From contig CAJFCJ010000002.1 of NCBI GenBank assembly GCA_904063045.1, positions 4,087,891-4,151,890 of the forward strand: a stretch of 64,000 bases of DNA. The letters are read 5' to 3'. The first letter of the stretch is position 1; each line of letters starts with the position of its first letter. Under the pieces are notes generated by a model. That model was given only the letters and a program-made list of their open reading frames with translations. It was not told where the DNA came from and did no database searches. Source of the DNA: Dimorphilus gyrociliatus (Eukaryota; Animalia; Annelida). The position numbers and the translations under genes were made by a program. Positions 12,588-25,803 of the stretch are shown here, piece after piece.

Positions 12588-13852
12588 ATGAGCGTCACTA
12601 ACTTTTTATATAAATCAATTATTTCTGCTATCTTTATCTTCCATCAATACGGCGTTATTCATCTGACTGATATCAATTTTAAACTAGAAAATAACACCAC
12701 AAATAATCTAAGAGATAATCCATTATATAAAGGAAATGATAATATTATTCTTTTTGATTTGGTCTCATTTTGGACAAGAGAAACAGCCAGAAAGTCAGGT
12801 AAATATCTAAATAGGGTAAAGCAAAAATGGAAAAAGTTTAGCTCACGTAGAAAAAATCTGGATAATTCCAATAACGAAATCGAAATTTCCAATCCTTCAC
12901 GTCGCTTATCAAACGAAATTGAGGTTGCTGAAAGAGATTTTAATTTTCGATTGGATACCGACGACACTGAAAGATATAAAACCGATATTAAAACAGCTTT
13001 ACTCTTGTCTTTTTACCATAAAAATGTTGTTCGTGGAGCTTTGAGAACAATATTAACGGTATTTACTGGATTTATGAACATTCCAGGAATATATTTTGCT
13101 AGGAAAGCGAAAAAAAGATGGAAGTCTTATCATAATAGAATACGAGCTGGTTTCGCTTTTTTCGGATTTACCTCCTCAGTCGTGGCAATTCTAGGTGGTC
13201 TCTACGAAAGTGGTCTAAGTGAAATTGCAAATTACGTTCCAATGATTGAAGATGAAACTTTGGAAGATTTTAGAGAAATGGAAGAAGAAGATGAACTGTT
13301 AAAAGATATTGAACAGAGTGAAATTCTAGTAGAAAAAGAGAAAGTATTGGAAATAAAACTGTCTAATGAATTTGAAGAAGACCCTAAAGATATTTCTTTC
13401 TTATACGTGGAAGATAGTAGGGTTCCTAATTCAACGTTAGAACATCCGTCATCATATAATTTCGTATCAACTTTCACTTCTCAGAATAGAAGAACTGAGT
13501 TTCTCCGAAACAGTTTGTTTTTCAACAACATTATGCAAAAAAACGCATACAACTTACTTTTTAATAAGGTGCTACTACTAAAGTTCCCAAACTGAGTACA
13601 TTTAGATCTGACTTAAAAGCGGCCTACTTCCTCCCCATACCTACCAAATTGATAAAGAAAAGTCGTACGATTTATTTAACTACAGTAGTATATTTGGGAT
13701 GTTTTATGATATTTATCGTAACCTTCGCAATAGCCTATCTTTCGCACAAGAGGAATAGAAAAGATTCAATAAACACGTTTTTAGAAATAATTACACCTTT
13801 CCAAGAAACCAGTAAAAGTTCAGAAAACTTTGATTTAAAACAAGAAGCCTAA
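12588..13852 (+). CDS. Orphan multi-segment membrane protein, ~402 aa; exons 12588-13512 and 13569-13852
   Basis: A 56-bp phase-1 intron (gtttgt...aag) joins the 335-aa ORF to the frame of the 13649 ORF. Two central hydrophobic segments, an acidic region and a C-terminal TM helix. Head-to-head with HYAL. Confidence 0.55.
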
Positions 13853-14601
13853 AATGATAATAAAACAACTTTTAAGACTTGACTCTTACATACGTATATA
13901 AAACTTTAATGTATATAATTTAAATATTAATACTTTTATTAAAATCTAAAAAAAGCATATTTTACCTTTAAATAACGAATAATAGATAATTAAATAAGTA
14001 ATTACAACTTGTAACCATTGTTACTGCACGCCATCTTGTGTTAGAAAGGGAGCGAATGTTATACTATGTATAAATTTATAGTCGTTAATTTATCCAGGTT
14101 TAAGTCTTCTAAAAAAATGTAAAAACACTTACAAAGTTTATTAACCTAAAAACAACAATTTAATAACCAACATAGTACAATAGGTTTATGTTTGAGAAAA
14201 AAGAACAAAGAATTATAGACAAAAAAAATGGCTGATTTTATTAAAAAAAACAAAAAAACTGAATGCAAAAGCACTAAATTTAACAATATATTTAAAGAAA
14301 AAACATTGAAAATGTAGAGAAGGAAGCAATGAAGAATAGAAGTGGGTATTGGTATCTAGCTGAAAAATGATAGATATGAATCATTACTATCAATAGTATT
14401 CTAATTCGAAAGAAAAATGAATTGCTAATTAGTTTTACTTAGAAAAAGAAATAGTATTTAATAAATATTAAATAGGTTAGTGATTATACTACGAAATAAA
14501 TGAAAATTTTCTTTCACCTAATTAATTAAATATAAATAATTAATTACTTTTCAAACTAAAATTAGATTGAATAGCACATGCTCAAGTATTTTCTTGTTTA
14601 G

Positions 14602-17600
14602 ATGTTGTTTGAACAAGGAATAATTATGATATCTCTAAGATTTTTTGCCGTTTTAATTGCTTGTCTGTTTTTTACTTGTCAATCCGGTGAGATCTGAGAT
14701 ATTAGATTACAATATTTATCTTATTAATTTAAAAATAAATGTTTCTTTATTTCATTAGCAATCGTTTTTGAAAAAGGTAAATATTTAAAAGTGAGGATAT
14801 ATCTTAACGCTCCGCCAGAAAGTTATATAATAACATTAAAGGCTTGCTACAAGGATAACTTACGTTGTCTACAGAATAAAATTACTTATTTTCAAAGTTC
14901 AAATGCTCTTGACCTTTTTAAAATTGGTAGAACTTCTGGAATTCTATCAACTGCAAAAAGAATTACGGACAAATTGGGAACTAATTATCCCTTGTTTGTA
15001 TACGCTTCTTCGACCGGAACATTTTCTTATATTAAAATAGACGTTGTTGTTTCTATATTTAACAATTTTCAACCACATTTCAAGAATGATATTATACACG
15101 TATGGCTATATAAGCATACCGCTACCAGTACAAAAATTGCCAAGTTGGAAGCTAGTGATGACGATGTTGTTGACTACAATAGAGAGATATACTATGAAAC
15201 CGAAGATAAATTCAAAGATTTAGGACTAGAGCTTGATAGAAGTGGTTGGGTTTCTCTAAAATCGGAAATAATACTTCCGCTTAGATCCACAACTGACGTA
15301 AGGATAGTTGCCAGAAATACCGGTTCACCTTACAGGGAAGATTGGATGGTTTTGAGGCTTACAATTACAACCTTATCACCTCCTAGAAATTTGACAATGA
15401 GATCTCGAGGCAAGAATTGGATTCAATTCTGTTGGATACCACCAGAAACGGAGCCAATCACAAATTATATTATAAATTTAGAAAAGAACGATTCACTTAT
15501 ACTTATTCAAAATTTAAAAAGTAGTATACCCTGTTTCAATGCTACGAATCTAATTAAGTGGAATGTATATAAGGCCTATATGTATGCCATGAATATAAGT
15601 AATGAGAGCGATGATAGAAGTCCATTATCAAACAATGTTTACGCAGTTCCAAAAGGAGAAGGTAACTTAATATTTTTTCAACTATTATTTTATAATACCT
15701 GAGCCAAGTATATTAAAAAAAAATTTTAAATACAGATTGCCTTAGACAGCCCTGTATAAAGGGTAGGTGCCTGGAAGTAAATAATTTCCCAGGTTATAAA
15801 TGCTATTGCTTGGAGAATTACTACGGCGACCAGTGCCAGTTTCGAGACAAATGTTCTGATATACCTTGTAAGAATTCTGGTACATGTTTAACATTAGAAA
15901 ATGAGAATTATGAATGTATATGCAAACCGGGATACTGGGGTAGTGATTGCTCAAAATTTAATCCTTGCTCATTGAGACCTTGTTTTCAAGGCCAATGTAC
16001 AAACATAACAGACTCAATTTATGACTGCCAATGTTATCACAATTATTATGGCAAAAACTGCGACATGATAAATAGATGTACGAAAAAGCCTTGTCTTAAT
16101 TCAGGACAATGCTCTCTTATTGGTAATGGAACGTACTCTTGTACTTGTAAAAAAGGCTTTTTTGGTACTAATTGCGAAAGGAGGGATCCATGTGAAAGTA
16201 AGCCTTGCGGATTTTTTGGAAAAGAGTGCCAAAATATTACCGATTACGAATATAATTGCATATGTTTTGATGGATACTATGGCAAAAACTGTAAAAGATA
16301 TAATCCATGCATATCTTCTCCATGCATGCACGATTCGCCATGCCTGAATATTTCAGACACTTTTTTTAATTGTCAATGTCTTAAAGGTTATTTCGGGGAA
16401 TTTTGCGAGAAAAGAGACTTTTGCGATATGTACTCACCCTGTCTAAAGGGCAATTGTTTCACTCAAGGAGATTCTCTTTACGCCTGCGAGTGCTTAGATC
16501 CGGAATGGGGTGGTCAGAATTGTTCAATATTTAATAGCTGCTATAAATCGCCATGTTTACGGGGAACATGTTACATGACGGGTAATTTTAGCTTTCAATG
16601 CCAGTAAGTTGTCTTCTAAACTATAATAGCGAGGGAATAAAATTACATAATTCTTTTCTAATATTATCAGATGCCCAAGTCCTTATTGGGGCGACATTTG
16701 TCAGTATATAAACCCTTGTCAATTATCCGATGCTAGATGCTTTAATAACGGAACGTGTGTCAATGAATCGGACTCTTATCGATGTCAATGCAAAAAGGGA
16801 TATATTGGTGACAAATGCGAACATTTCAATCGATGCCTTGTAGAAAGGCCATGCCTTAACGGAAAATGTATATATCACGGAAATTCATCATCTTCTTGTT
16901 CATGTAGTAGTGGATTTTATGGTAACTCTTGTCAATATTTTGATAGATGTATTTTAGAGCCTTGTAGAAATCAAGGCACTTGTAGAAATATATCTAGCAA
17001 TGTCTACGAGTGCGATTGTCGAGGAGGCTATTATGGACAAAATTGCGAGAGTTTTAATCCATGTTTTTCAAAAAAATGCTTCAATGAAGGAGAATGCAAA
17101 ATTTTAGGACAAAACGAAGATGATTTTGTTTGTCAATGCAAACCAGGTTACTACTCAAGATTTTGTGAAAATTATGATTCTTGTTATACTCAGCCTTGCC
17201 TGTCTGGATCTAAATGTTTAAACATTTCCAATACTGACTATATCTGCAAATGTACGGAAGGTTATTACGGAAAAACTTGTGATAAATTCGATCCATGTTC
17301 GAATTTTCCATGTAAAAATTCTGGAAAGTGCGTTAACCTTACTAATACGCACTATGATTGTAATTGCCTAGCTGGATTTTACGGTGATAGGTGTGAAAAT
17401 TTTAATCCTTGTTCCCTAAATGTTTGCAAGAATCATGCAACTTGCGTCGATCTTGGAGATAGAGATTACTCTTGTCTCTGTGCAAATGGCTATTACGAAT
17501 CCGATTGTTCCAAATTTAACCCTTGTGTTAGTTCACCTTGCCTACATTTTGGTACGTGTGCAAATAAAAGCTCAAACTACTATGAATGTAAATGTCAAAG

Positions 17601-20600
17601 GGGTTTCTTTGGTGAAAGATGCCAACACTTTAATCCTTGTTCAATACAACCTTGCTTAAATTCTGCTACATGCTATATGAAAACAAATTCTACATATAAT
17701 TGTGAATGTCCAGACCTATTTTTTGGTACAAATTGTCACAACTATAACTTCTGTAAAAGTAATCCCTGCTTAAATAATGGCTTTTGTCAAATAAAAAATG
17801 TTGCTGAAGATTTTAAAGAAGACAACCTGAGAAAAGTTAAAGTTAAAGAAAATAATGAAACATTTGTAATTTCAATTGAAAATGATTTTCTATGTACCTG
17901 TCCGAATGGGTTCAAAGGTATATATTGTGAAATTGATATAAATGAATGCGAATCAGAGCCATGTTTCTTTGGAGGCACTTGCTTAGATGATACAAATAGC
18001 TTTAAATGTGAATGCGCTCCTGGATATACAGGAACTTTATGTCAAGAGGATATCGATGAATGCAAAAGTTCACCTTGTTATAACAAAGCAACATGCTTAG
18101 ATTTAATTAACGAATATAGCTGCCAGTGTTCGATGGGGTATACAGGACAAAGGTGCGAGTTAGAAATTAATGAATGCAATAGTAATCCATGTTTAAACAA
18201 CGGAACTTGTTTGAATTTATTAGCATCCTATTCATGCATCTGTCCCCTAGGTATGACTGGCGAAAGATGCGAATTCGAAACCAATGAATGCTTATCATTA
18301 CCTTGCTCAAACAATGGAAAGTGTACTGATCTTGTTAACGGATATGCTTGTTTTTGTGAAACTGGCTTTACTGGAGCAAATTGTTTAACAAACATATTTG
18401 AGTGTAGTAGTAGCCCTTGTAGTAATGGTGGCGTTTGCATAGATCAGGTGAATAAATTTTATTGCAGATGTTCAGGAGGTTATACTGGATTATTATGTAA
18501 TGAGACTATAGACGAATGTTCAAGTAACCCATGTGAAAATGGAGGCAAATGTATAGATCAACTAGATGGTTTCACTTGTTCATGCAAGTCGGGATTTACT
18601 GGACTCCGTTGTGAATTGGATATTAACGAGTGCTCATCTCTGCCATGTTTGAACAATGGCAGATGTATGAACTTGGTTAATACCTTTAGTTGTTCGTGTT
18701 CTCCTGGCTGGAATGGTACATTTTGCGAATATAATATTCCTGAATGCGAATCAGATCCGTGCTTTAATGGGAACTGTATAGATCATATTGGCTTTTATGA
18801 ATGTGTTTGCAAGCCAGGTTTTACAGGAAGTCAATGTGAAATAAATATAAACGAATGCGTTTCAAACCCTTGTTTTTCAAACTCAACCTGTGTGGATTTA
18901 ATAAATGCGTATACTTGTCAATGTCCACCCGATTTTACAGGAGAACACTGCGAGCAAGAAATTCAAGAATGTCTATCTAATCCTTGCGAAAATGGAGCTA
19001 CATGCACAGACGGAATAGATGGTTTTACATGTTATTGTATTACTGGTTTTACAGGCGATAGATGTCAAGTAAACATTGACGATTGTATTTCGTCACCGTG
19101 TGCGAACAATGGCAAATGCATCGACCACGTTAATTCATACTTTTGCGATTGTACAGAGGGTTATACTGGTTTGAATTGTTCTGAAGATATTAATGACTGT
19201 GAAAAACAACCATGTATTAGAGGCAATTGTACTGATTTAATTAATGGTTTTAAATGCACTTGCGAAAATGGCTATACAGGTAAAACTTGTGCAATCGAGA
19301 TAAATGAATGCCAATCATTGCCATGCGTTGGAGGAGGAACATGTATAGATCAATATAACTCTTGGAAATGTATTTGTCCAATAGGCTATTCTGGGTTAAG
19401 TTGTGAGAAAGAAGTTAACGAATGCGATTCGAATCCTTGCACGAATGGGGGTTCATGTTTAGATAAGATAGGCGATTATTTTTGCATCTGTCCACTAGGC
19501 TTCACAGGTAAAATTTGTCAACAGGAAATTGATAATTGTACTCCAAACCCTTGCCAAAATAACGGCAAGTGTAGTAACAGAATTGAAAGTTTTGAATGTT
19601 CCTGCGAGTCTGGTTTTACTGGCAACACATGTGAAGTGAATATTGACAATTGTATCCCATCACCATGTTTGTTTGGCGGAGAATGCGTTGATATGGTAAA
19701 TGATTATAGATGCAATTGTGCTAAAGGGTATACTGGTAAAAACTGCGAAACTGAGATTAACGAATGTATCTCAAATCCGTGTAAAAACAATGCAGACTGC
19801 CTCAATTTGGTTGGAATGTATGTTTGCACCTGCTCCTTGAATTTCGAAGGGATCAATTGCGAGAACAAGAAAACCGAATGTGATTCATCAATTTGTAAAA
19901 ATGGTGGAAGCTGTTTAGATCTGATTCAAGGTTATTTTTGCAATTGTCCTCGTGGTTATGCAGGAAAACATTGCGAAACAAATGTTGATGATTGTACACC
20001 TAATTTTTGTAAGAATTCTGCCAAATGTGTGGACTTATTAGGGACATTCTCTTGTTCCTGTTTAGATGGGTTTACTGGAGAGTTTTGCGAATCGGATATA
20101 GACGAATGTGATTTAAATCCATGCATTAATGGAAACTGTAAAAATTCTGTAGGAAGCTACGAATGCATTTGCGATTTAGGTTTCAGTGGTAAGAACTGTC
20201 AAACGGACGTAAACGAATGCCTATTAAATCCTTGCGTTAAGGGATCTTGTACAAACTTACCCGGTTCTTATAGATGTAATTGCGATTCCGGTTTTACTGG
20301 AAAAAATTGCCAAACAAAAATACAAACATGCCAAACTTTGGAATGCATTTTTGGTACATGTCAAGTAAATGGCTCTGAACTAGTTTGTAAATGTTCCGAG
20401 GGTTACACTGGAAGTAGTTGTCATATAAATATAGATGACTGCGTTTCAAATCCATGTCTTAACGGTGGAACGTGCCTTGACGGACCAAATCTGTATACTT
20501 GCCAATGTAATAACGGCTATAAGGGAATCAGATGTGAATCCAATATAAATGACTGCGATCCGAATCCCTGCCTTTTTGACGGCGTCTGTAATGACCGAAT

Positions 20601-23600
20601 TAACGACTATGAGTGTAATTGCAAACCAGGAACTACTGGTTTGTAAAATTTCCATATAAATATGTATAAAACGAACACATGAATATGTATATTTTTAACA
20701 ATCATAAATATTCATTATTTAGGAAAAAGATGTCAAACAAACATAAATGAATGCAATAGTAACCCTTGTCAGAATGATGGACAGTGCATCGATGAATTGA
20801 ATTCATACTTATGTAAATGTCAAACGGGATACAAAGGAATGTCCTGCGATCAGATAGGTAATAAAGAAAACTTAATTATTTATAGGAATAAACCTTTTAT
20901 TAATTCTTTATTTATTTATTTATTAGTTAAATGCCCGACAATAATTGAATCTACACAATTTGGGAATTACACTTGGCCTCAAACTAATCATTCTTCTGCA
21001 ATATTCCTAGAATGTGAATTCGGACATTTAGACGCTACTAAGTTACATACAGCTGTAAAATCTTGTTTATTAGTGAATAATGAAGGAAAGTGGCAATTAA
21101 CAAATTATAGTAATTGTCGAACGGTAAAAGTTTATCATCAAAAAGATAGTTGTAATTATGAATTTATTATAATTATTAGAAAGAGAATGTTCTAGCTGAG
21201 AATACTTTAGCTTTTCATTATAATGAAACATTGGTGAAAAAAATGGACAGCAAAGTAATTAGTAATGCAATTGACGCACTTGAAAATCTTGAAAATTATG
21301 CAAGAATCAATAGAAAGGTATTACTCTGATTGACTGTTATCTTTTATATTGAATATATATTATATATATTAGTATATACAGTATATATGTACATATATAA
21401 CGTATACAATAAATTTATATACTAATGGAACAACTAATCTTAATCCTTCAATCAGATTGGTGAAATGTTTCTCCAAGTTGCCAGTAATATTATTGAAAAT
21501 GGTGATGATGATAGCTTGATTCCTATGCAATCTAATCTACGGTATGAATAGTATGATTGATTTAAAGAAGAGAAATAAGTTTTTCTCTCGTTTTGTTTCA
21601 TTAGATTACGAAAAATTCTTGAAAGTTTTATAAAAAACATTGATCTTATCAGATCTAAAGAATACTCAATGATTAGTAATAATATTGCATTAAAAGCTTT
21701 AGAAATTCAAAGTGAAAACAAGAATACAATTAATGACATTTTGGGATCATCAGAGGTATAATTTGAATCTAACTTTTCATACAAGTAGAACATTTTTCTT
21801 TCATAATAGCCACTTCCGGTTATTGAATTATCCGATAAATTCAAGGGCACGAGAATAAGCATTTTAGCATATAGAAATTCAAAACTATTTCCAAAAACTA
21901 GTGAAGAAAAATTAAAATATAATACATCTTCCTCTCTCCCTTCAAGACCTACGTTAACTATTCTAACCAATAGGACTATACCAAACGTTAAAGGATTAAT
22001 GGTCTATAATATCGCTTATACGGAACCAGTTAGTACTGATAAATGAAAGAAACGTTTTTTAATCGATGAAATATTTTGCCATTTTTTCTAGGCGTCTAGG
22101 GAATATTTCCAAAAGTGCATATTCTGGAATAATTTTGGTAAAATTTATTAAAATATTAGTTATAAATATTTATTTGAAAAATTTCTAGTAATTTATTTTA
22201 AATATATGTATTTTTAATTTATTTCTTACTTTCATATAGAAAATCAATGGTCTGATAAAGGCTTGGAGACGAAAGTTATAAATAGAGACAAAATTATTTG
22301 TACGTCATCTCACCTAACTGATTTTTCTGTAAAATGGGTTTGTATTAATTAATTAATTAATTACAATCGCTTTAAACTTAATAGAAATTTACCTTTTTAC
22401 AGGAGAGAATACCTGATTCCTTGTATAATGATGTTATTGAAACAGCACTTAGTGTTTACATAGCTGCATCTATAAACATAGGCTGTCTGATATTTGTTTT
22501 GGGCGTCTATTTTCTATACTAGTAATATAAGCATAGATATTATTTTTTAAATAGGGGCATAATTTTATTTCTTATTTCAAAAACAGCTATAAAAGAGGAG
22601 ATCATCAAAGTCAAATTGTTATCCATTTAAAGACTTCAAATCTCTTTTTTTACATCTTCTTAATTATAGCATCGCTAAGAAATTTTATTACAAATAAAAA
22701 TGGTTGCATAACGGTAGCTTTCGTCTTTCACCTGTCTACTCTACTTTCTATGGTTTGGAGAGTCATAGAAGCATTAGATTTATATAGAGGATTTTCGAAT
22801 ATATTTATCTCTTATGAAAGTCATATAATGATTTATAGAATATGTATAGCTTGGGGTAAATTTTTATTATTGTTATTATTATTATTATTATTATTATATA
22901 TACCTGTCTCTATATATTATCTATTAATTAGCTTAACTAATTAAACAATCTAATACAACTTTTGCCATTCTTTTCAGTAATATCATTAGCTATACCTCTA
23001 ATTGTTTTGGTTGCGGATAAAGATAATTTCTTCCCAACTGACCAAAAGTAATAACTTTTTCATTTTACATTCTACTTTATTAATATTTCCTTTTACAAAA
23101 AAAGAAATTAGAATCATTTTTTAATCATATAAGAATATAAAGAGGGAAAAAAAACATGTAAAAATGTTCATAACATAATAAATGTCATAAAAGTTTCATA
23201 GACTTTTATTGATTGAATTTAATTATCACAAGCTCTTTTGGCCATAAGATAAAAAAAGGCTGCTAATCGTTCAAAAGATTCTACTTTCTTTTTAATTGCA
23301 TATATTAAAAGATACAATAAGTGATATTTTAAGAAACAAATTACTAACAGGTGCCATATTACAAACGACGATACCGTATTTTACTCGACAATAGTTGCAG
23401 CGTATGTTCTCGGAATAGTAGTTATAAGTACAGCAATTATTATCTGCCTTAAAATGCTCTCGAAACCAAAACACATTACCAATATAGACGTTTGCTCTAT
23501 AAGGAGAGGTTTCCTTGTTGGCAACCTTTGCTCTTGCTATTTATTTACAACGCTATGTCTATTAATTCATTTTTCATTTAAATTTAATAAGGACATTTTA

Positions 23601-23834
23601 CAACATCTTTTTGCTGCAACAAGCATCATTCAAGCGATAGTAAATGTTCTAGTCAGATGCTGGCTGAACGATGAAATGAAACATTATCTATGTAACTTTC
23701 TCAAATCTGAGGAGAATAGCATTTACGAAGAAAACAGAAGAAATACTCAACAATTTGACGATATTTATGACAAATCATTAAGCGAAAGTATTCCAGAATC
23801 ATCTACGCCGCAACCTCTCTCTCACATCGAATGA
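14602..23834 (+). CDS. Adhesion GPCR, ~2611 aa, 16 coding exons: signal peptide, 2 degenerate cadherin-like domains, FN3, 43 EGF repeats, HormR, GAIN/GPS, 7TM
   Basis: All 15 introns are GT-AG and phase-consistent. Cadherin motifs ASDDD and ARNTGSP, FN3 PPRNL...W.PP, HormR CPT...WPQT...C...W...C, GPS CIFW...W...G...CTSSHL/TDF, and family-2 TM motifs (IH, C..VA...H, IEALDLY, AWG). Confidence 0.88.
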
Positions 23835-25803
23835 TAACAACATTTAAGAAATCACATAATTAATTAACTGTTACTACTCAGTTGATATCTTTTAGACGTT
23901 GAGCAATAATTTTCTAACTTTTCTATAACTATCTATACAAACTGTAGTTATTTTTCATATTAATAAAATATAAGGCGGTTGAAATTTATAAACACAGTAT
24001 ATAATAGTACATAGTAAAAAAAAAAGTCTATATAAAAGGCTTTATGACGTTTAAAAATACAACACTACTTGTATACATATGTATATAGAAAATACGTATA
24101 AGTAGGCATATATTATGTAAAAAAAAAATATATATATATATCCATTTTTTTATCATTATTCTTATACATCATACTTAGTACGTATGTATTGTTTCAAAAA
24201 CATAAAAACATTCAGTTGCTTCTTTAAATTAACAGTATTTTTTTGTCTTTCTTTTAGTGCATTAAAAATATTGATATACTTTATATGATAAAAACAGGAA
24301 CATAATCCATTATCATAAAATATAATATAATATTTATATATTCAAATATATATAACAGAGTAATTAACTTTTTAAACGGTTAAAAAAGTTTTCATTAAAA
24401 TTGAAAATATTTATTATTCTTTTTCTCTTAAAAGTTGAATAACAACTATTTATTTATAATTTAAATAGTTTTAAATTCAACACAATTTACATTTTTGAAT
24501 AGAAAATCAAGAATTGCTTATGTTTGCCCAATGCAAATAAATAAAAACATTTTATCAAATGACCAGTAGACTATTTGTAGTACATTGATTAAATCTTTGT
24601 TTAGAAAATCGAATAAAATATGTTTTGTAGGCTGATAGTTGCATATTTTAACTTAATGATATATCTCTTTGCGCTCTCAAATGCCTAGTCACGCGTAATA
24701 TTATTTTACTTTCGTAACCAATTGTATACAAGAAATAAATTCTTAAACATTAGTTTTCAATGATTTCATGTATTGAAAAACAGTTTAATTAATATTTACT
24801 CTTCCCCCTTAATAAAACAAGGAAAATATAGATATTTATTCTTAATAGGCAAACCGTTGAAAACTTATTAATGCTTTTCTAAGCAGGACAAAATTTCAAG
24901 AGAAATATACTTGAACACTTAAAAGATTTATTCATTCATTTTTAAGGGAAAAACTATGCCAACTTCAGAGAATTTTAAAATGTTTATGAGGCATAATAAG
25001 ACAAAGTACACTAGAAACTAGATGAAGATGCTTGTGCAAGACAATCAAAAGAGATGTTTTTTTTTGCTGACGCATCTCTATAAAGAATATACATTTTTTC
25101 AAATACAGGTATTGTATTGATTTTGTTTTAACTTTCCAACTTGTAGAGGATGAGTTACTGAGATTTAGTTACTAACTGAAAGGAAGCATCCATAGTCAGC
25201 AAAAATTTCTATTAACGAAGAATTAATTTGAGAAGACTGGTAAAGTTGATAGTGTGGCATACAAAAAATACCTTTCCTATCATTTTTGGGTTAATGATAA
25301 TAAAACAGACATCGTATATAAAATATACAAAATATTTCATATAATTATTTATATGTCTATTTTAGACAGAGTTAGTATTGAATTTAGTATATATGTTATC
25401 TTTTTTCTCGTCTTTCTCTCTCTTTTAATGGAATAAGAAAGAGTAATTTTTGCCTAGTTTCTAATTTGCCAAACTATATTCTTCGCTATACAGGAAGTAA
25501 GGGGAACCAAGCTTAGGTTAGATAGAAGAATTTATTCATCGATTCGGAAGCAAATAAAACCGAATAAATTTAAAAATAGACTCTTCTTTCCTACATTTTC
25601 CTATCAGAGCTATATATTGCGTGTTTTATTTTTATATCGCTTGCAGATTCTGTACAAAGAGTATTTAGGGAAAGAAAATGAAAAGAATTTCATTAATTAC
25701 CAAGGGGAATACTTGTATTGTTGCCATCTTCCTTTACCTAATTTTTGGCATTTGTGTTATGGATAAAAATATTCCGTTTTTCAATTCCCGGTTCAACATT
25801 CGA

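Follow-up and report, generated by a model that had tools for sequence, protein, structure and literature searches.

A Dimorphilus adhesion GPCR with 43 EGF repeats is probably the annelid member of a widespread protostome receptor family

The subject of this study is a single gene in a 64,000-nucleotide stretch of the Dimorphilus gyrociliatus genome (contig CAJFCJ010000002.1, positions 4,087,891 to 4,151,890 of the forward strand), which we refer to as the window and whose own numbering is used throughout. The gene lies at 14602-23834 on the plus strand and encodes a G protein-coupled receptor (GPCR) of the adhesion type, in which a signal peptide is followed by two cadherin repeats, an FN3 domain, 43 six-cysteine epidermal growth factor (EGF) repeats, a four-cysteine HormR domain, a GAIN domain with its GPS motif, and a seven-transmembrane (7TM) domain. 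We think it very probable that this gene is the annelid member of a widespread and conserved family of protostome adhesion GPCRs. A broader proposal, in which the receptors of this architecture would constitute an unrecognised, protostome-wide family related to ADGRG2/4/6 and the tethered-agonist switch of the annelid copy would have been re-wired or abandoned, is put forward tentatively.

The window is AT-rich (26-38% GC in 2-kb steps), and three-frame translation of 14000-24600 on the plus strand gives a run of cysteine-rich open segments. When the junctions are read and the exons assembled by script, 16 exons are obtained, all bounded by GT donors and AG acceptors with compatible phases and zero internal stops, in an open reading frame (ORF) that opens with an ATG at 14602 and closes with a TGA at 23832-23834. 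The introns are short; the genome paper gives a median intron length of 66 bp for this species (PMC7854359). A preliminary description of the same DNA had proposed sixteen in-phase exons and a product of 2,611 amino acids, and the rebuilt model agrees with it when the exon 12 donor after 22337 is used. The order of domains that it proposed is likewise borne out by Pfam, by fold models and by hydropathy, as set out below; the Pfam scans took in all exons except the short exons 1, 11 and 15, and on the scanned exons they returned zero matches to LNR, ankyrin, DSL or laminin-G, also as the preliminary description had it.

The N-terminal tip is encoded by the first two exons. Exon 1 (14602-14686) supplies the start codon and a signal peptide (amino acids 1-28) before a GTGAGA donor, and in the hydropathy profile, which shows a signal peptide and seven hydrophobic membrane segments, residues 1-35 form the strongest hydrophobic segment of the protein. 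Exon 2 (14759-15661, amino acids 29-330) carries the two cadherin repeats and the FN3 domain. Pfam detects Cadherin in two stretches (36 bits against a cut-off of 28.8) and fn3 at 27.3 bits against a cut-off of 25, and an AlphaFold model of the exon (300 amino acids; predicted local distance difference test, pLDDT, 87) consists of three beta-sandwich domains that match the tandem cadherin repeats of PCDH15, CDH23, CELSR1 and FAT4 at E ~1e-12. Homology to the N-termini of the related proteins described below supports the same assignment.

Between the EGF array and the GAIN domain, exon 6 (20927-21123) encodes 65 amino acids that, taken alone, are undetected by the Pfam HRM model. Aligned with 15 relatives, however, the segment shows invariant C, G, W, C, A, C, W and C columns, and the HRM model matches 12 of the 16 aligned family segments, reaching an E-value of 3e-7 at best. 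Modelled with AlphaFold (pLDDT 93), exon 6 finds as its best folds in the PDB the HormR domains of CRFR2, BAI3, ADGRB2, CRFR1, PTH1R, GPR126 and latrophilin, with TM-scores of 0.6-0.66 and E-values that stay at or above 0.07, which is expected of a domain this small. We identify exon 6 as a HormR domain because of the family alignment and this fold comparison together.

The GAIN domain and GPS motif are spread over exons 7-12 (21180-21317, 21456-21541, 21605-21755, 21810-22028, 22092-22137 and 22240-22337, the last ending at 22328 with the alternative donor discussed below). This assignment draws on Pfam GPS scores of 29.2 and 26.6 bits, where 22.5 is the cut-off, on the family alignment, and on conservation in a related species. 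The GPS Cys, Trp, Gly, His and Thr are retained, and the HL/T cleavage site is present at 22311-22319, where it had been placed previously. Exon 13 (22403-22521) contains the linker after the agonist peptide and then TM1; exon 14 (22587-22855) contains intracellular loop 1, TM2, TM3 and the start of TM4; exon 15 (22978-23047) contains the rest of TM4 and the start of extracellular loop 2; and exon 16 (23351-23834) contains the Cys of extracellular loop 2 and TM5-TM7, and closes with a short cytoplasmic tail and the TGA stop. The TM2-4 exon lies barely over the Pfam 7tm_2 cut-off (21.1 against 20.6) and in a PDB sequence search matches ADGRG6, ADGRG4 and ADGRG2 at E 4e-4 to 1e-3, while the TM5-7 exon alone has no significant match in either the PDB sequence search or Pfam. 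With a GPS inside a GAIN domain directly before TM1, and with seven hydrophobic segments, the protein belongs to class B2. A short TTA/TTG trinucleotide run is found in intron 14 (22862-22900), between the TM2-4 exon and the TM4 exon.

The relatives of this gene were recovered from both ends of the protein. An exhaustive HMMER search of 1.8 billion proteins with exon 2 returned many giant cadherins together with proteins that matched as one stretch at their own N-terminus, and the N-termini of the family (P0053, P0070, P0102 and P0103) are matched over the full length of the exon at E-values of 1e-14 to 1e-18. By Pfam, the family proteins contain Cadherin (twice), fn3, an EGF array, GPR128_GAIN_subdomA/GAIN, GPS and 7tm_2. 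The spliced C-terminal 624 amino acids of the window protein, from HormR to the end, match the same proteins end to end, with 142 bits to the protein from the brachiopod Lingula. The window gene thus resembles Lingula LOC106154118 and its mollusc and arthropod relatives in its whole domain order, with homology at both ends, and differs from them in having most of its EGF array in one exon, a 7TM and agonist core that have diverged much further, and a short tail.

As a family these proteins are unnamed, and in the databases they are mislabelled. The Lingula anatina gene LOC106154118 (XP_023930465 and isoforms, 1,766-2,699 amino acids) is called "neurogenic locus notch homolog protein 1/2" by NCBI, the scorpion member "CELSR2", and the spider members "ADGRG4" or "ADGRG6", and the millipede and planthopper entries are without a family name. 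When the Lingula GAIN-7TM region was used as the query of a word search, five molluscs (one named "CELSR2", one "ADGRE2-like") joined the set, along with a tick, a locust and a lobster, so that the family is found in Lingula, five molluscs, spiders, a scorpion, a tick, a millipede, two insects and a lobster. The preliminary description had foreseen misannotation as Notch or fibropellin, and its Notch half is borne out by the Lingula names, while the other names in use are CELSR2, ADGRG4/G6 and ADGRE2-like. It had also treated the architecture as standing alone, which is not supported: the same domain order occurs in public protein sets of a brachiopod, molluscs, chelicerates, a millipede, insects and a lobster, with up to 39 EGF repeats in Lingula. 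A further copy, with about 42, is carried by an unannotated contig, ENA ERZ25767047 ctg38380 (1.0 Mb, 42% GC; our L003/L004), which has a cadherin exon, an FN3 exon and the EGF repeats, with a giant exon as in the window gene and another exon for one EGF, and then a HormR exon, GAIN, and a 7TM whose TM6 is canonical; its 1,380-amino-acid EGF ORF ends at the 3' boundary of exon 4 of the window gene.

Three derived features characterize the family: a GPS of the form C-x-S-x-H-[LM]-T, in which most members have Ser in place of the second Cys of C-x-C-x-H-L-T, an agonist region that reads TxF[AS][ILV]LLDPxP, and the four-cysteine HormR domain. The GPS of the window gene reads CTSSHL/T. The number of EGF repeats varies from 5 in chelicerates, 7-9 in other arthropods and 12-15 in molluscs to 18-39 in the Lingula isoforms and 43 in the window gene, the highest count among the sampled members. 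We found no description of the family in the literature searched, although coverage was incomplete and this is not proof of absence; a 2019 reclassification places Lingula receptors in unnamed invertebrate clusters and leaves the cadherin-FN3-EGF layout unmentioned (PMC6900090). Among matches of at least 1,484 amino acids to the Lingula GAIN-7TM region, the insects are represented only by the locust and the planthopper, and there is no fly, beetle, moth, wasp or nematode. The model of one member, Uloborus diversus LOC129230454 (P0179, 2,040 amino acids), also contains reverse-transcriptase and RNase H Pfam domains, probably from a retroelement fused into the gene prediction. It may be that the principal invertebrate model organisms lack the family, and this would account for its having escaped study.

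Residues 331-1985 of the window protein contain 258 cysteines, which by Cys counting make exactly 43 six-Cys EGF units with regular spacing, the number arrived at previously. Exon 3 (15736-16603) encodes EGF 1 to most of EGF 8, units of the non-calcium-binding type recognized by Cys spacing and Pfam EGF; the giant exon 4 (16671-20638; 3,968 nt; Pfam EGF 638 bits) takes up the array at the end of EGF 8 and covers it through most of EGF 42; and exon 5 (20723-20857), assigned by Pfam EGF and conserved in a related species, holds the end of EGF 42 and EGF 43, a calcium-binding EGF (cbEGF). The array falls into two parts. In EGF 1-18 the linkers are five residues long, of the xFNPC type, and the calcium-binding consensus is missing; EGF 19-43 are Notch-like, 17 of them carrying the D/N-x-D/N-E/Q cbEGF consensus, against 3 such repeats in Lingula. 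By our own regular expressions, the O-glucose consensus is present in about 20 units and the O-fucose consensus in about 15, motifs whose meaning is established for Notch-type EGFs.

EGF 18, after which the Notch-like cbEGF run begins, has a 35-residue insert between its third and fourth cysteines, and it and Lingula EGF 17 are reciprocal best matches, both with a long Cys3-Cys4 insert and both following an NYNFC linker. Six reciprocal-best EGF pairs link the two proteins in perfectly colinear order. The best partner lies in Lingula for 9 of the 43 units of the window gene, and the EGFs of the second half are mostly closer to each other than to any Lingula unit. These comparisons would fit a long array of old origin that has its first half in common with Lingula and in which the cbEGF units were later duplicated or homogenised. 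The five predicted isoforms of the Lingula gene differ only in EGF number (39, 37, 35, 33 and 18), a pattern suggestive of EGF exons spliced as cassettes; the stalk of the window gene could not vary in this way, because 34 of its EGFs lie in one exon. A word search with the giant exon, restricted to proteins of 727-2,313 amino acids, gave only Notch, crumbs and eyes-shut-type matches; it found no near-identical spliced product, in part because its length window excludes a protein of 2,611 amino acids.

A 245-amino-acid database protein, 75% identical to exon 2, led us to a genomic contig of 11.4 kb belonging to a related species (Logan SRR23372229; L001) in which all 16 exons are colinear, with conserved splice sites and 55-89% amino acid identity, while the introns differ in length and align poorly. 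Over 7,173 aligned coding bases dN/dS is 0.095 (Nei-Gojobori, with dS saturated). For individual exons it is 0.14 in exon 2, 0.075 in exon 3 (79% identity) and 0.068 in the giant EGF exon, and it falls to 0.056 in exon 14, which encodes TM2-4 and is the best conserved of all at 89% identity; exon 16 is 72% identical. Every exon is under purifying selection.

The placement of the receptor among adhesion GPCRs was examined with a maximum likelihood tree of the GPS-7TM region (41 sequences, no ADGRE sequence being included). The outgroups (ADGRG4, CELSR1, ADGRL2, and receptors of cnidarian, echinoderm, sponge, ctenophore and other mollusc origin) are united in a clade supported at 97/91, outside which lie both the family and the window protein, and the window protein joins the base of the family. 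Phylogeny of this region had been named in the preliminary description as a check on the gene, and it delivers the split between outgroups and family while leaving the window protein itself on a long branch.

Several observations weigh against our reading of the gene. The branch leading to the window protein measures 4.28 substitutions per site against a median of 0.44, and its position in the tree is open to long-branch error because the 7TM is very divergent. Of 99 columns conserved in at least 90% of the family, the window protein keeps 38, fewer than ADGRG4 (70) or CELSR1 (45), and of the 43 columns conserved in the family and the outgroups alike it keeps 23. Its score against a family GPS-7TM profile, 130 bits over the full length, is below that of every outgroup. 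The gene model itself contains an ambiguity, as exon 12 has two in-phase candidate donors: GTAAAA after 22328, which gives a protein of 2,608 amino acids, and GTTTGT after 22337, which adds Val-Lys-Trp to give 2,611 and is favoured by alignment of the agonist region to the family. A search of sequencing runs listed none recorded as RNA. Finally, canonical activation of the receptor is uncertain, for reasons that lie in the pattern of its substitutions.

All GPS residues conserved across adhesion GPCRs are kept, as are the Cys of TM3 and of extracellular loop 2, the Trp, Glu and Tyr of TM3, and the Gln of TM7. Replaced, on the other hand, are Pro and Asn in TM5, Gly-x-x-Trp-x-x-Gly in TM6 and Gly in TM7. 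At the agonist core the family pattern TxF[AS]xLL has become TDFSVKW, the Thr and Phe being retained, with Lys for Leu at position 6 and Trp at position 7. The protein ends 321 residues after the GPS, compared with 392-769 in other family members. Identical replacements in the agonist and 7TM occur in the related species, so they are fixed and constrained and are not the product of decay. As judged from these comparisons, the membrane part of the window gene has changed unusually fast, yet its 7TM is under strong purifying selection.

How might such a receptor work? We suggest that the cadherin-cadherin-FN3 tip would bind a partner on another cell or in the matrix, and that the EGF array, by analogy with what is known of adhesion GPCRs and cbEGF repeats, would serve as a long semi-rigid stalk that passes on tension or position. 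At about 2.5-3 nm per EGF, our own estimate of its extended length is of the order of 100 nm. The intact motif indicates that the GAIN domain would cleave itself at HL/T, with the ectodomain remaining non-covalently attached and able to transmit pulling force or binding events to the 7TM. In the last step, the agonist peptide of the annelid lineage would activate the 7TM, or the 7TM would work in an altered way. The force-sensing tethered-agonist receptor envisaged in the preliminary description is therefore retained in part, with the cleavage residues kept and the agonist core and conserved 7TM residues altered, and use of the usual tethered-agonist route in the Dimorphilus lineage appears doubtful.

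Another possibility is that the annelid receptor has given up classical tethered-agonist and G-protein signalling and acts mainly as a cleavable adhesion molecule or as an anchor that presents its ectodomain, or else through a re-wired mode of activation. The departure of the agonist core from TxF[AS]xLL, the loss of the TM6 Trp and Gly, the TM7 Gly and the TM5 Pro and Asn, shared with the related species, and the far shorter cytoplasmic tail all point in this direction. However, the TM2-4 exon is the most conserved in the gene, which suits a working 7TM better than a plain anchor, and the Glu and Tyr of TM3, the TM3-extracellular loop 2 Cys pair and the TM7 Gln have been retained. We regard this possibility as worth entertaining but unlikely, and lean slightly towards a 7TM that still signals in some way, in dependence on the ectodomain or the agonist peptide.

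Of the vertebrate receptors, the closest to the family 7TM is ADGRG4 (E ~1e-70, 32% identity; CELSR1, 4e-35), and ADGRG4 (GPR112), ADGRG2 and ADGRG6 are also the closest among solved structures. These receptors have a HormR domain directly before GAIN and an agonist core of the TxF..L[LM]D type, as found at the level of the protostome family, but their ectodomains consist of pentraxin, CUB, SEA or mucin-like stalks and not of cadherin, FN3 and EGF domains. These ectodomains are also very long and are thought to sense force (PMC10687090). Membership of the ADGRG2/4/6 group was considered and rejected, ADGRG4 being placed with a Lymnaea LRR receptor inside the outgroup clade. On this evidence the protostome family is best described as related to ADGRG2/4/6 and not a member of that group.

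We also considered whether the EGF array and the GAIN-7TM region might belong to two adjacent genes, a secreted Notch- or fibropellin-like protein and a short adhesion GPCR. The run search, with none listed as RNA, leaves room for such an arrangement, and the short single-EGF and HormR exons could in principle fit either unit. The structure of the locus argues otherwise: once spliced, the giant exon does not end in an in-frame stop, the splice phases fit across all 12 downstream exons, and the HormR exon brings neither its own start codon nor its own signal peptide. The related-species contig (L001) and ERZ25767047 (L004) preserve this colinear order, and more than 20 species have a single predicted protein that combines cadherin-FN3-EGF with HormR-GAIN-7TM. 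Because both ends of the window protein are homologous to the same proteins elsewhere, two separate genes are hard to reconcile with the data; the comparisons support one gene, and division into two is very improbable and close to refuted.

Still less credible is the reading of the gene as a strongly derived orthologue of CELSR/Flamingo (ADGRC) that has shed its laminin-G domains and the majority of its cadherin repeats, which could appeal to the presence of cadherin, EGF, HormR, GAIN and 7TM in one chain and in a CELSR-like order, and to the database name CELSR2 of some relatives, but which has to contend with just two cadherin repeats where CELSR has 8-9 along with laminin-G and laminin-EGF, with zero matches to either of the latter on the exons scanned, with an FN3 domain foreign to CELSR, with the far better 7TM match of the family to ADGRG4 than to CELSR1, with a tree in which CELSR1 groups with ADGRL2 and a cadherin-7TM protein in a clade apart from the family, and with a 'stan' label in the GPCR figure legend of the genome paper that suggests a separate orthologue (PMC7854359).

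The remaining resemblances are confined to the ectodomain or to the general plan. Like Notch, the window protein has a long EGF array with calcium-binding, O-glucose and O-fucose consensus sites; unlike Notch, it is without LNR, NOD, ankyrin repeats and a single-pass transmembrane segment, and its C-terminus is HormR-GAIN-7TM. A fragment of Notch or fibropellin is thereby rejected, given the lack of LNR and ankyrin Pfam matches on the exons scanned and the GAIN-7TM C-terminus. ADGRE (EGF-TM7) receptors have few EGF repeats, placed directly before GAIN without HormR, and a 7TM that groups with ADGRE/L; the HormR domain of the window protein together with its better match to ADGRG argues against ADGRE membership. 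The earlier opinion that the receptor is of neither the Notch, the CELSR nor the ADGRE type is thus upheld by Pfam, the 7TM scores and HormR, the tree bearing on CELSR1 only. A Notch-scale EGF stalk on an adhesion GPCR is nevertheless not unique to this gene, because two other predicted proteins have one: a Sycon ciliatum 'fibrillin-2-like' protein (P0222, 4,247 amino acids) with about 63 EGF repeats upstream of 7tm_2, and an unnamed Amphiura filiformis protein (P0203, 3,750 amino acids) with about 28, to which HYR and Ig domains are added. Both are without the cadherin-FN3 tip, have cbEGF repeats of the fibrillin type and belong to different 7TM clades.

Directly upstream of the receptor gene, at 12588-13595 on the plus strand, lies an ATG-initiated ORF for an acidic, Lys-rich protein of 335 amino acids with one hydrophobic stretch.

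Invertebrate-specific clusters of adhesion GPCRs with highly varied ectodomains were already known (PMC6900090), and neither the family nor the window gene overturns the current understanding of these receptors. What is modestly new is the largest EGF count in the family combined with a strongly altered 7TM. The labelling of one conserved family as Notch, CELSR2, ADGRE2-like, ADGRG4 and ADGRG6 means that counts of Notch or CELSR genes in lophotrochozoans will go astray. The family also offers a graded natural series of stalks (with 5, 8, 13, 39 and 43 EGF units) while the tip and the GAIN-7TM are otherwise constant, which suits tests of how the length and rigidity of the ectodomain affect force sensing by adhesion GPCRs. 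The Dimorphilus copy is the extreme case, with the longest stalk and a 7TM that is heavily altered yet constrained. If its switch has indeed been lost or re-wired while strong selection kept self-cleavage and the longest stalk, it would be a natural experiment that sets the adhesive or mechanical role of these receptors against their G-protein role.

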